A stretch of 63,984 bases of DNA, filler included, from Reticulomyxa filosa (taxonomy: Eukaryota > Protista > Foraminifera), in NCBI GenBank assembly GCA_000512085.1. It is 18 parts of 18 records of this genome, joined end to end, with 100 filler letters (N's around TTAATTAATTAA, not from the genome) between each part and the next. Parts side by side here need not be neighbours in the genome. Positions count along the whole stretch, not along the records: positions 38,939 to 42,708 come from ASPP01014356.1; 17 more parts are not named here. One strand, written 5' to 3'. This document shows, one piece after another, positions 38,810 to 44,192 of this stretch. A program made the position numbers and the translations under genes. A model generated the notes under the pieces. The model searched no databases and was not told the DNA's origin. It saw only the letters and a program-made list of their open reading frames with translations. Position 1 is the first letter of the stretch. Every line of letters begins with the position of its first letter.

Positions 38810-38952
38810 CAAAATAATACACTTTTTTTTTTTTTTTTNNNNNNNNNNNNNNNNNNNNNNNNNNNNNNNNNNNNNNNNNNNNTTAATTAATTAANNNNNN
38901 NNNNNNNNNNNNNNNNNNNNNNNNNNNNNNNNNNNNNNTTTTTTTTAAAAGT

Positions 38953-40387
38953 TTGCGTGCAGAAATCGAGTTTGATGAGAGATTTGGCGCACGCGACAAT
39001 CTAAGTTGTGTACACATGTTACAATTCGGATACCCGTTGAGCACGACGGACACGAGCACAGGGAAGGAACATCGTATGCAAGTGGACGCGAGCGACGCGA
39101 AAGAGAACGTGAACGCGATGGCGTACCTGACGAAGATTGCCAGCGTGGACTACCGCGAGCGCTGCTCATCGTTGCAGAACCAGTGTGTGCAGGCGTTAAC
39201 ATTGCGAAAGACCGAGCAGCGACTAAGTGGTGGGCCTTGGATAATGGATGCGAACATTAATATTAATGTCAATGCCAATACTAATGTCAATACTAATGCC
39301 AATGTTAGTTTAGGTATCGATAGCAGTGGTGACAGCACATCGATGATGGACCAGATCGAGAGTGATTTCAACGACTTGATTTGGAGCTTGCCGAAGCAGC
39401 AAGATCTAAAGACTGCTATTCGACAGCTCAACGCGAACCACTTGACAGGCCTGCCTAATCGAATTGCATTTCGCACGTGGTACGAAGCAGAGATGAAGAT
39501 GCGCATGTCCATGCATGTAAATGCAAGTAATGGAGATGGTGACGACGAGGATGATAGCGATGATAATAAGAATGACAATAATAATGACAATAATAATAAT
39601 AATAATAATAACAATAATAATGTACAAACAATTGTGGCTAAAAAAAAAGAGCAATTCAAAAACGGCCATTTGGCATAATCAATATGAACATTTGCAACTT
39701 GGCTCTTTTGAACGAGGTGGTAACACATCAGGTGGTGGACCAGATAATAATCCGCATCGCGAACATCTTGCGAACGGGCGTGGATGCGAACGCGGCAATT
39801 TCGCGCTGTTCATTGTACCACTGGAACGCGGGCGAGTTTGTAATCGTGATGCTGGTGGACCAGGAGCAAGAGCTGCTGCATTTCGCCAAGTTATTGATCC
39901 AAACGATTTCGACGCAGCAGGAATATATCAAGACGTCGATTCCGCCCATTTTACAGAACAAGATCGGTCTGTCAGTGCTTACTGTATGCGCGGGGTGCGC
40001 GATTCACTCGGAGCGCATGGACTTTGGACAATGGATCGCCGACGCCGACCACGCCTTGGAGGTGGCCAAGCGACAGGGTCCTGGCAGCATTGTCAGCGCA
40101 TCTAACATCGACGTGAAGAAGGAGACACTAGCTTTGTTCAAAGGGATTCAGGACGAGTATCCGTCCATCGGACATATCTTGGAGCACATTCGCAATGGCG
40201 CCGATCTCGACGAGGTCGACCGCTTTGGCAACACCGCTCTCGCGTCTGCTCTCAAGATGGACAAGAACAAACGTCCACTCGTGCAAACACTGACATATCA
40301 GCCCTTCAATCCCAAGCTGCAGGACAAGCTTGGCAATACGCATTTGATGAAAGGTTTTTTTTTTTAAAAAAAAGAACTGAACTTTTT

Positions 40388-40420
<33 letters not shown>

Positions 40421-41359
40421 TTTTTATTTTTTTAAACCAAACCAAACAAAAAAAAAAAAAGGCATGCTCGAAGGATGGGACGATGGAATTGCTTGCCATT
40501 GGCATTGCAACCTATCAATCCCAATTCAATGAACACTGACGGCCATACGGCGCTGGACATTGCGCTGCAAAAGGGATACAAGTCCGTGGTGGACATGCTG
40601 TCCCGCTATTCGGTGGACAACTCGCTGAACCTGTTCGGCGATCGACAGTACGCATTTGCGTGGTTCAACGCATGCAAACAGGGCAGGGTAGACCTACTGC
40701 GACAATACCTCTCGCTGGGCTTTCCTATCGATGCCTTTGACTTTTCCAAACAACGCACCGGTATCACGTGGGCCTGCGGTCGCTCTCAAATCGACGTGGT
40801 CAAGTTCTTGCTCGACCCCAAGCCCATCGCCCAATTCGACAGCTCCGCCTTTGCCTTGATCAAGCTGGACCAAACGTCGATCAAGAGGCTCTTCGACCGA
40901 AACAAAAACAAAAAGCTCATGTCTGCCAATGTCAATCTGGGCGATCAATGGAACATTGGTCCTATCTATTCTCTGTTATCCGAGAAAGGGCGCGGCGTGG
41001 CTGCCAAAGAAGTTTTTCTTTTTCGATATTAATTATATATATATATATATATAATTAATATATTATAAGTGTTCATTTCATACATTTGCAATCAATGTTG
41101 CTTTTATTCTCTCGTGTGCGTGTATGTGTGTGTGTGTGTGTGTGTGGTAGCTTTTGCCACTATTGCTAAAAGCTGGAGCTGATGTGAATGCTGCGTCCAT
41201 AGGCGGAGTCACGCCGCTGCACGAGGCCGTCGAACAGGACTACTTTGAAGCGTGTCTGATACTGATCAACCATGGAGCCAACTTGCTTGTCAAGACGAAT
41301 AAAAATTACGTTCCAATTGTAAACGCATTGCAAAAATGGAAGCCGCAAATCTTGAAACT

Positions 41360-41396
<37 letters not shown>

Positions 41397-41612
41397 ACTC
41401 GACAATTGGCTGTGCAGGTGCTCGAGTTGATGATCAGCAAGTGCTCGCCTGCTGATATTCTCACCTCTTTTCCTTTGCCCGATGACCCCAAACAAAAACA
41501 GAAGTCGGTCACTATTCTGGAGTTGGCAAAAGACTATGCGTCCACCAACATCCCAAAGATAGTCGATCAAAAAATGAGTGAGTTGCTAAAAAATTGGCAA
41601 CCAATCTCATAA
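38953..41612 (+). CDS. Degenerate GGDEF (diguanylate cyclase-fold) domain fused to ankyrin repeats; 5'-partial; introns 40354-40461 and 41012-41150; apparent frameshifts near 39645 and 40490
   Basis: HLTGLPNRIAF, FGIINMNICNLALLNEVVTHQVVDQIIIRIANIL, YHWNAGEFVIV, LTVCAGCA and ADHALEVAKRQG give the full GGDEF motif order. Ankyrin motifs GNTALASA, GHTALDIA and GVTPLHEAV follow. Confidence 0.8.
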
Positions 41613-42041
41613 GAGAAGAGAAGAACAGAAAAAGAGGAGGAGCAAAAGATGGCTCATATCGGACAAGATAAATGAGGGAAGAGAGTAAAATAGCAATCAT
41701 TTCTTCTTTTCATTTTTTGTATATTCGTTTTTTACAACAAAAAAAAAGATGGTTTGATCAATGTTCAAGTTATATGGTCACTTCACATCTTTGCGATCAT
41801 CGAAAGCTTTCATAACAACAATTCCACAAATAATATCATAATAATTGTAAGTTATTTCTTGTGTACTTACCCTCTTGCCAATAGCTTCAATGTAATTTTT
41901 TACGCCATTTTAAAAACATTGCTGACCACAATACATAAAACGATCAAATTTTGTAGATTGAAACTTTCAACAGCGAAAAAAAAATCGGAAAAGGAGCATA
42001 CAAATATATATATATATATACAAATCTAAGAAAGAGCAAGG

Positions 42042-42613
42042 ATGTCAATCGGGCCAAACAACAAATTGTCTGAGAGAAGTTATTTTGGCAAACATTTTGC
42101 CCATGACATGCCTCAATCTCCACGCCCCCGACGGTCGTCAATGTCACCGTTTGCTTGCAAGTCACGCCAAACGGCGCCTAGTCTTGTGAGCATGTCAAAG
42201 CGTAGATATGTTTTACAAAACAAAATCGGCGAGGGTACATACGGACAAGTGTTCATGGGATACGAAATTGAAAGTAGCACTCCAGTGGTGGTAAAGAAGA
42301 TGAAGCGATTTGAAGAGGAAACGGAAGGCTTCCAACCTTGCATGATTCGAGAGGCAAGCAAAAAAAGAGAGATAAAAAGTGTCCGAATCATAGTGTTTTT
42401 CTGAGCGTTAAAAAAGAAGCTTGTTGTTGTTTGCATTATCACAAATAGATATCCTTTTTGAAAGCGTTGAATCATCCTCGCATTGTGTCAATGTTTGACT
42501 TCTATATGCAACATGACACATTGCACGTAGTATTTGAGCAACTATCAATGGACCTGTATCGATTCATGCATACCAAAAAATGTTCCAAATTTTTGGATAA
42601 GTCATTTGTCCAA
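42042..42613 (+). CDS. Cyclin-dependent kinase-like Ser/Thr kinase, 3'-partial; GC-AG intron 42354-42448
   Basis: KIGEGTYGQVF, VVVKK, GFQPCMIRE|ISFLKALNHPRIV and HVVFEQLSMDL. Confidence 0.88.
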
Positions 42614-42676
42614 GTTGTGCTTTGTTATTATTATTATTGTTATTAATGCTTATTATTCATCTCTCCTCCAAAATAC

Positions 42677-42707
<31 letters not shown>

Positions 42708-44192
42708 TNNNNNNNNNNNNNNNNNNNNNNNNNNNNNNNNNNNNNNNNNNNNTTAATTAATTAANNNNNNNNNNNNNNNNNNNNNNNNNNNNNNNNNNNN
42801 NNNNNNNNTGTGGATGTTATCTGGCCCTTGAGCTTTGTATGGAGACAAATGTAACGTGATTGTACATCCAATTCAACATCATCCGTTCTCCAATTACTAA
42901 CAAATGGAAAAATAGATGATGAACATAATGTAATACTTGATGTTGCGTTGTCTTTCATGAATGTGCATTGGATATAATAAAATCAAGAATACACTCACCC
43001 GCATATGTGCATTCCAATGATGATATATTCAGTGATTTTCAGAGCAAGATTTAATTCTTGCTCAAATGAGGTCGTATTGAATTGCTTACAGATTGCAAAA
43101 TAATAATGGTTTATTTTGACCAGGACAAGAGATTTCCACCCAACACGATTCATAACCAAACACATTAAATGTCCGGCATATTATTGAATGATCGCAATGT
43201 TGAATGCAAATATCTTCGGCATAACACTCCAGACCTTACTGTCTCACTCCAGTGATGAACATAAAAATACTGGAAGTTATAATCGATATTTTCTTCTTTG
43301 ATCTAAATCCAAAAAAAAAAATATAAATCTATATTATCATTATTAACGGTCATCGTGAAAAATCGTCAAGATTATCTCGAGATCACTTCAAGTAAACTTA
43401 AAACAAGTGGATATATCGATATATCTCAAAATCGTTGAAAAAGTCAAGTAGTTCCAACACAACAAGAATCCTCAAGTCAAAGTCCGAAATTATTTTTTTT
43501 TTACTAGTAAAATTAATTTTTATGTTGGATTTTGTGATATTGTTCGTATTGAGATATGAAAAAAAAAAATTTTAGCACCTTCATAATCATTTTCAACTTA
43601 CTGCAAAAGTTGTTTTTTTGGAGGGATCTAGGTCAAGATAATCCAAGATCTTTCAAGATTTGAACTTAATTTTGGAAAAAATTCTTTAGGAAATTTCCTT
43701 AAAAAAATTGATTGTTATTGGAAGATTATTTGGATTAATTAATTGAAGGATTTATTTGAAACGCTTGAAGAGGGTCTTTGGGATATTAAAAAAAAATCAC
43801 AAATTTGTTATTTTGAAGATTTTTGTATTGGGATTTTAATTGAAATTTGATAAATCTGACATTTTTCATTAGAATATTCTATTGGAAATTAATTGTAAGT
43901 TTTATTAGAAAATTGTAATTTAAAGGTTATTTATTAACTTTTATTACTTGGGGATTAAGGCACGATCAGACAGGACGCGAAAACAGCGATACAAAGTTTT
44001 ATTTAAGGAATAGCGACGTCCCCTTGCAAAAATTTTGCTTTAAATATTAAAGTTTTTGAAGTTTGGTGAAAGATGACTTCATTGCCGAACAANNNNNNNN
44101 NNNNNNNNNNNNNNNNNNNNNNNNNNNNNNNNNNNNTTAATTAATTAANNNNNNNNNNNNNNNNNNNNNNNNNNNNNNNNNNNNNNNNNNNN

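Follow-up and report, generated by a model that had tools for sequence, protein, structure and literature searches.

GGDEF domains were once described as entirely absent from eukaryotes (PMC2904730), before Dictyostelium DgcA, and in eukaryotes they are still called only occasional (PMC13375341). How, then, does a gene of the foraminiferan Reticulomyxa filosa come to join such a domain to a stack of ankyrin repeats, and what might the domain do there? The gene lies in a window of 63,984 nucleotides, the whole stretch of DNA that was presented, which consists of 18 parts of assembly GCA_000512085.1 joined end to end with filler. Our analysis covers the piece at positions 38939-42708 of this window (record ASPP01014356.1); the gene model was built from the sequence alone, and homology searches and folding were carried out exon by exon. 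The reading that we prefer, with a probability of about 0.4, is that a bacterial cyclase domain was domesticated long ago and would now be a pseudo-enzyme whose guanine pocket serves an ankyrin scaffold as a switch that needs no metal.

Gene model and genomic context

The coordinates of the predicted features are collected in Table 1. The N-terminus of the protein and the 5' end of the gene probably lie off the contig, as the piece appears to open in the tail of an intron ending in CAG at 38962. Position 38953, from which the initial annotation counted, is just an ORF-finder start and lies ahead of the end of this putative tail. The frame of exon A contains no stops, against 11 and 14 in the other two frames, with a GC3 of 0.60, and in a Pfam profile search the exon matched no family. 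Within it, an N/V-rich low-complexity stretch (39227-39313, +) is flanked by an in-frame GT...AG pair and has a coding-versus-intron score of -7.7 bits; it could be a further intron or an insertion in the coding sequence.

Table 1. Predicted features of the GGDEF-ankyrin gene and its neighbour, in window coordinates.
Feature	Position	Strand	Evidence and remarks
Probable 3' end of upstream intron (inferred)	38939..38962	+	T-rich, ends CAG; GC 0.29, T 0.50
Exon A, open frame 38941	38963..39526	+	N-terminal region, N/V-rich low-complexity stretch, then pre-GGDEF helix
Predicted dimerisation helix and wide-turn motif, N-terminal part of GGDEF domain	39343..39501	+	DgcN and WspR likeness
D/N-rich stretch, GT-AG intron or coding insertion	39527..39651	+	See Frame changes
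Degenerate GGDEF core	39657..40079	+	Pfam, alignment, column test, AF2 model, Foldseek
Linker helices and first ankyrin repeats	40110..40353	+	Same exon and frame as GGDEF core
GT-AG intron, phase 1	40354..40461	+	GC 0.11, poly-T, (AT)n, poly-A
Exon C, ankyrin repeats	40462..41011	+	Ank_4 E 6e-10, Ank_2 E 2e-8; PDB ankyrin matches
Frame break within ankyrin repeat, frame 38940 to 38939	40484..40499	+	No splice solution; composition model places switch here
GT-AG intron, phase 0, in frame	41012..41150	+	Sequence, composition
Exon D, ankyrin repeats, (DN)n insert, stop TAA at 41610-41612	41151..41612	+	Ank E 1.5e-7
Neighbouring CDK-like kinase, cut by contig end	42042..42708	+	Pkinase profile; best PDB matches CDK12/13/CDK1

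The ankyrin repeats are interrupted by two AT-rich introns predicted from the sequence (40354-40461 and 41012-41150), both GT-AG, in keeping with the host-type spliceosomal introns originally described. The CDK-like gene starts 430 bases past the GGDEF-ankyrin stop, and within it a predicted GC-AG intron (42354-42448) joins MIRE to ISFLKALNHP, with a next intron predicted from 42614. Its C-helix motif is divergent (QPCMIRE versus PSTAIRE of CDK1), and it has a Ser/Arg-rich N-terminal extension. Taken together, the ankyrin introns and the CDK neighbour with its GC-AG intron point to a eukaryotic nuclear gene and make contamination very unlikely. As 69% of the prokaryote-derived genes of R. filosa have gained introns (bioRxiv 10.1101/2023.01.27.525846), a domesticated bacterial domain in this genome is not odd in itself.

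A GGDEF domain fused to ankyrin repeats

The core at 39657-40079 is a true GGDEF homologue. Profile PF00990 matched the frame at 39642-40364 with 37.9 bits (E 1.9e-9; gathering score 23.8) over profile positions 29-158 of 161, and TIGR00254 matched at E 4e-9, just below its cut-off. The first 28 profile positions, missing from the core, were found in the preceding frame, where NHLTGLPNRIAF lies at 39436-39471 (frame 38941, +); the DxLT motif here reads NHLT and is followed by GLPNR (39448-39462). The predicted helix and DxLT turn match NCBIfam DgcN weakly (E 0.005) and align weakly to the DGLTGLSNR stretch of WspR. The later landmarks follow in frame 38940 of the same strand, with IINMNICNLALLNE from 39675, WNAGEF at 39822-39839, and LTVCAG then ADHALEVAK to 40070, all in the order and at the places that the initial annotation had listed. 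Of the checks that it had proposed for the domain, the profile comparison gave a match to GGDEF and the structure prediction a model compatible with that fold. The best PDB sequence matches of the core were DosC and Dcsbis, and the AF2 model of the GGDEF exon (pLDDT 85.8) has a palm-type alpha/beta fold that Foldseek matched to solved structures at E 2e-9 and a TM of ~0.7, GGDEF domains being all of the best 50 matches. A GGDEF alignment underlies the model, so this match shows compatibility with the fold and is not proof independent of Pfam.

A receiver domain upstream, as in REC-GGDEF proteins of the WspR/PleD type, was considered and rejected: the REC profile scored 0.4 bits, a score matched by 258 of 2000 shuffles, and PF00072 was not found. 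Over 73 residues (39310-39500, +) the sequence resembles, without gaps, the end of the WspR receiver and its helix (pairwise E 0.005); this resemblance was picked post hoc, and the profile test of it failed. A ubiquitin-like domain at 39022-39233 (+) was likewise set aside, with 24 residues aligning, no Pfam match, and low E-values that are a sum over polyubiquitin repeats. This stretch has a likeness to the start of ubiquitin and an RLSGG end ~68 residues on, which is not significant; it could be a very degenerate ubiquitin-like domain.

Downstream, neither a stop nor an intron separates the GGDEF core from two helices, which the AF2 model places at 154-180 immediately behind the last GGDEF strand, or from the first ankyrin repeats, and all share a single frame. 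Since this junction sits inside one open frame, the fusion is independent of the guessed gene model, and the claim that GGDEF and ankyrin belong to one protein stands. The repeats of this GGDEF exon (exon B) are below cut-off (Ank_4 E 0.004, Ank_2 E 0.01); those of exons C and D are above the Pfam cut-offs and form tandem 33-residue repeats at the C-terminus, giving ~8-10 repeats in total when counted by eye. Weak matches to Legionella Ank effectors reflect generic repeat similarity far below cut-off. Within exon B, GC3 hardly differs between the GGDEF part (0.68) and the ankyrin part (0.67), which argues that the domain has ameliorated to its host gene.

Frame changes

Exon A (frame 38941) and the GGDEF core (frame 38940) differ in frame, and the D/N-rich stretch at 39527-39651 lies between them. 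It contains a phase-compatible GTAATG...GAG pair whose excision restores the frame. Its T content and codon structure are exon-like, with the first 49 bases scoring +18 bits as coding, and its overall coding-versus-intron score is -3.8 bits. The change of frame is explained equally well if the stretch is a GT-AG intron or if it is a coding insertion and one base is wrong in the A9 run (39640-39648), so the poly-Asn/Asp insertion reported earlier within the domain may be an intron. Coding low-complexity inserts do occur in this gene, as a (GACAAC)n tract at 41361-41400 (+) encodes a DN run within the last ankyrin region. A programmed -1 frameshift at the A9 run was rejected, with no structure downstream (z -0.6).

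A second break was overlooked in the initial annotation, together with the option of a recent pseudogene. After intron 40354-40461 the ankyrin pattern keeps frame 38940 for ~9 codons and then continues in frame 38939, and no credible phase-compatible splice pair removes the change at ~40484-40499. Splicing from a GC donor at 40340, or from 40491 to 40573, would repair the frame but cut through well-formed ankyrin motifs, and a programmed frameshift was rejected for want of a slippery site. Only runs of two bases occur around the break, and a homopolymer error is thus not the obvious explanation; unsolved by splicing, it would be either an assembly error or a real lesion of a recent pseudogene.

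Active site and ligand pocket

To describe the active site we use PleD numbering and the residue roles given in PMC7288161. In PleD, D327 and E370 are the Mg ligands, each half-site needing both, while N335 and D344 read the guanine base (PMC7288161). By alignment and column test, D327 is replaced by N (39687) and K332 by A (39702); the GG(D/E)EF motif reads NAGEF (39825-39839), with G368 and G369 replaced and E370 changed to G (39831), and R446 has become P (40080). Residues kept are N335 (39711), H340 (39726), D344 (39738), R366 (39804), E371, F372 and K442 (40068). In the column test half of the 28 columns conserved in bacterial diguanylate cyclases (DGCs) were kept (14/28), the lost ones falling on catalytic positions while the guanine readers N335 and D344 remain. 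With both side-chain Mg ligands lost, synthesis of c-di-GMP is very unlikely and, to judge from these residues, the protein is almost surely not a cyclase; the catalytic inactivity proposed at the outset is strengthened by the concurrent loss of K332 and R446.

What the pocket might still bind is a separate matter. As a GTP half-site it keeps its base readers and has lost metal and phosphate ligands in part, and no EAL domain lies within 38939-42708. The absence of both Mg ligands and of two phosphate-binding residues weakens the case for an Mg-GTP sensor like CC3396. An RxxD I-site five residues before the signature motif is absent in either register, the D being A and no R coming first, so the usual route to a c-di-GMP receptor is absent. 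Thus the suggestion of a GTP or cyclic-dinucleotide sensor survives in part: the guanine pocket is kept, but sensing of Mg-GTP is weakened and the I-site is gone. The motif hairpin carries a five-residue insertion, which together with the replacement of G368/G369 may block the pocket, and the needs of folding alone may explain why N335, H340 and D344 persist.

Relatives, age and selection

The best matches of the GGDEF domain are bacterial DGCs, with ~27-37% identity over matched stretches and E-values of 6e-6 or weaker; apart from these, an unfiltered search gave one chance match. No close relatives were found in 185,579 prokaryotic genomes, JGI metagenomes or viral contigs. Neither the GGDEF exon nor the ankyrin exon nor a piece of the CDK gene gave a match in word-indexed searches, although these are length-limited and silent on longer fusions, and the exact ORFs are not recorded among predicted proteins. 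In a tree of 35 mostly GGDEF rows, from which DgcA was left out, the Reticulomyxa domain was 34% identical at most to the other members and sat on a branch of 5.45 (median 0.62) with no supported neighbour; the donor lineage would thus be obscured by this long branch. No DgcA-like sequence was among the matches of the unfiltered search, which suggests an acquisition separate from that of DgcA.

Simulated neutral drift to 30% identity produced ~5 stops, and none of the 300 runs was stop-free. As the GGDEF domain has none, it appears that its divergence occurred under selection on the protein and that any pseudogenisation is recent, though these inferences of selection and conservation come from one sequence. 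The ameliorated GC3, the long branch and the stop-free domain all agree with a long domestication, domestication as such having been envisaged at the outset.

Comparison with known systems

The domain shares with the bacterial DGCs (PleD, WspR, DosC, DgcB) a common fold, the domain order of helix, wide turn and core, and residues N335, D344, R366 and K442, but differs in the loss of catalytic and metal residues and of the I-site, in its introns and in its ankyrin C-terminus. The I-site c-di-GMP receptors PelD and PopA also have degenerate GGDEF domains; in contrast to these, RxxD is absent here. Degenerate GGDEF domains are known as nucleotide sensors, as in GTP-sensing CC3396 and in YybT (PMC7288161). 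Caulobacter CC3396/PdeA and the Bacillus ATPase YybT/GdpP likewise place a dead GGDEF domain beside an output module, but here the output is an ankyrin stack rather than EAL or DHH, both Mg ligands are lost and the host is a eukaryote. By analogy, the protein would work most like these two degenerate sensors, with a eukaryotic output module.

Among eukaryotes, a parallel is dictyostelid DgcA, whose GGDEF domain reached the dictyostelid ancestor by horizontal transfer (PMC10559540), and which was the first eukaryotic cyclase, highly conserved and active, its product inducing stalk cells (PMC4686194). Unlike DgcA, the Reticulomyxa domain has a dead active site and is fused to ankyrin repeats. 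Eukaryotic ankyrin adaptor proteins share with it the C-terminal 33-residue repeats, and the collections and literature searched yielded no ankyrin protein that also carries a GGDEF domain. The literature searched, mostly non-subscription and so not proof, likewise described neither a foraminiferan GGDEF domain nor a protist protein that joins GGDEF to ankyrin.

Alternative explanations and a proposed mechanism

The same origin would also fit a domain that has gone nucleotide-blind, its GGDEF fold now serving an ankyrin adaptor just for dimerisation or as a scaffold. We consider this a real but lesser possibility: the Mg ligands, K332, R446, both motif glycines and the I-site are all gone and the branch is very long, yet pocket-lining N335, H340, D344, R366 and K442 survive at ~30% overall identity. 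That the frame breaks are real, and the gene a recently broken pseudogene of such a pseudo-enzyme, is unlikely. It would explain a break at 40484-40499 that is unspliceable and set amid two-base runs, as well as the gene's absence from recorded predicted proteins. Against this stand ~740 codons without in-frame stop, intact splice sites and a retained GC3 bias. Each break would be mended by gaining one base, the same change for both and one typical of under-called runs; one of the two falls on the A9 run and a valid intron. As it stands, the gene is real and unusual by its sequence features, and the exciting reading of it draws on a single sequence carrying a frame break.

A receptor of c-di-GMP that senses prey or biofilm, or forms part of a host c-di-GMP pathway, seems improbable. 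The guanine pocket is kept, GGDEF domains of known structure show more than one mode of c-di-GMP binding (e.g. 3QYY) and Dictyostelium signals with c-di-GMP (PMC4686194, PMC10559540), but the missing I-site speaks against it, neither signal peptide nor membrane segment can be made out in the piece examined, and no cyclase, EAL/HD-GYP or PilZ partner is shown within 38939-42708. Both ideas raised initially, prey or biofilm sensing and an unrecognised eukaryotic c-di-GMP system, are unsupported, the RxxD site being absent and neither a partner cyclase nor a phosphodiesterase or homologue being shown from that piece. Highly improbable is a catalytic role, whether alone, in a heterodimer where an intact paralogue is the partner and this domain holds the GTP, or through a new activity such as a YybT/GdpP-like ATPase; the substrate-specificity residues, E371 and K442 are kept, but D327 and E370, which each half-site requires for Mg (PMC7288161), are lost along with K332, and the GGDEF_GdpP profile had no match in the exons searched. 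Finally, all database matches of the GGDEF domain are bacterial, as expected of a bacterial contaminant or chimeric contig, but the ankyrin junction lies within one open frame of uniform GC3, introns and a CDK gene follow on the contig, and nothing closely similar occurs in the prokaryotic genomes or JGI metagenomes; we give this next to no credence, in line with the view taken at the start.

Under the preferred reading of a metal-independent switch, a bacterial diguanylate-cyclase domain would have entered the protist lineage long ago, joined a C-terminal ankyrin stack, acquired host introns, lost catalysis and been retained as a pseudo-enzyme. Its N-terminal helix would still dimerise the GGDEF domain, and the former active site would bind a guanine nucleotide without metal, with GMP, GDP, pGpG or c-di-GMP likelier than Mg-GTP. 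Binding could then re-orient the directly attached ankyrin stack, such that different host proteins are recruited. The frame breaks are here taken as assembly errors or, for the first one, an intron.

Biological meaning

An intron-bearing, ameliorated and deeply diverged copy on a eukaryotic module indicates that another protist lineage has kept a GGDEF domain for a long time in a non-enzymatic job. It is doubtful that the gene encodes an intact, expressed receptor outside the dictyostelids, with its ankyrin repeats as the signalling output and c-di-GMP, or another guanine nucleotide related to it, as the ligand of the former active site; if it does, eukaryotes would have domesticated GGDEF a second time, independently, and would possess a kind of cyclic-dinucleotide receptor that has no kinship with STING. 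If a cyclic dinucleotide is bound, the protein may offer a route by which protists read a bacterial messenger, and if nothing is bound, it would still exemplify how a bacterial enzyme can become a pseudo-enzyme scaffold.
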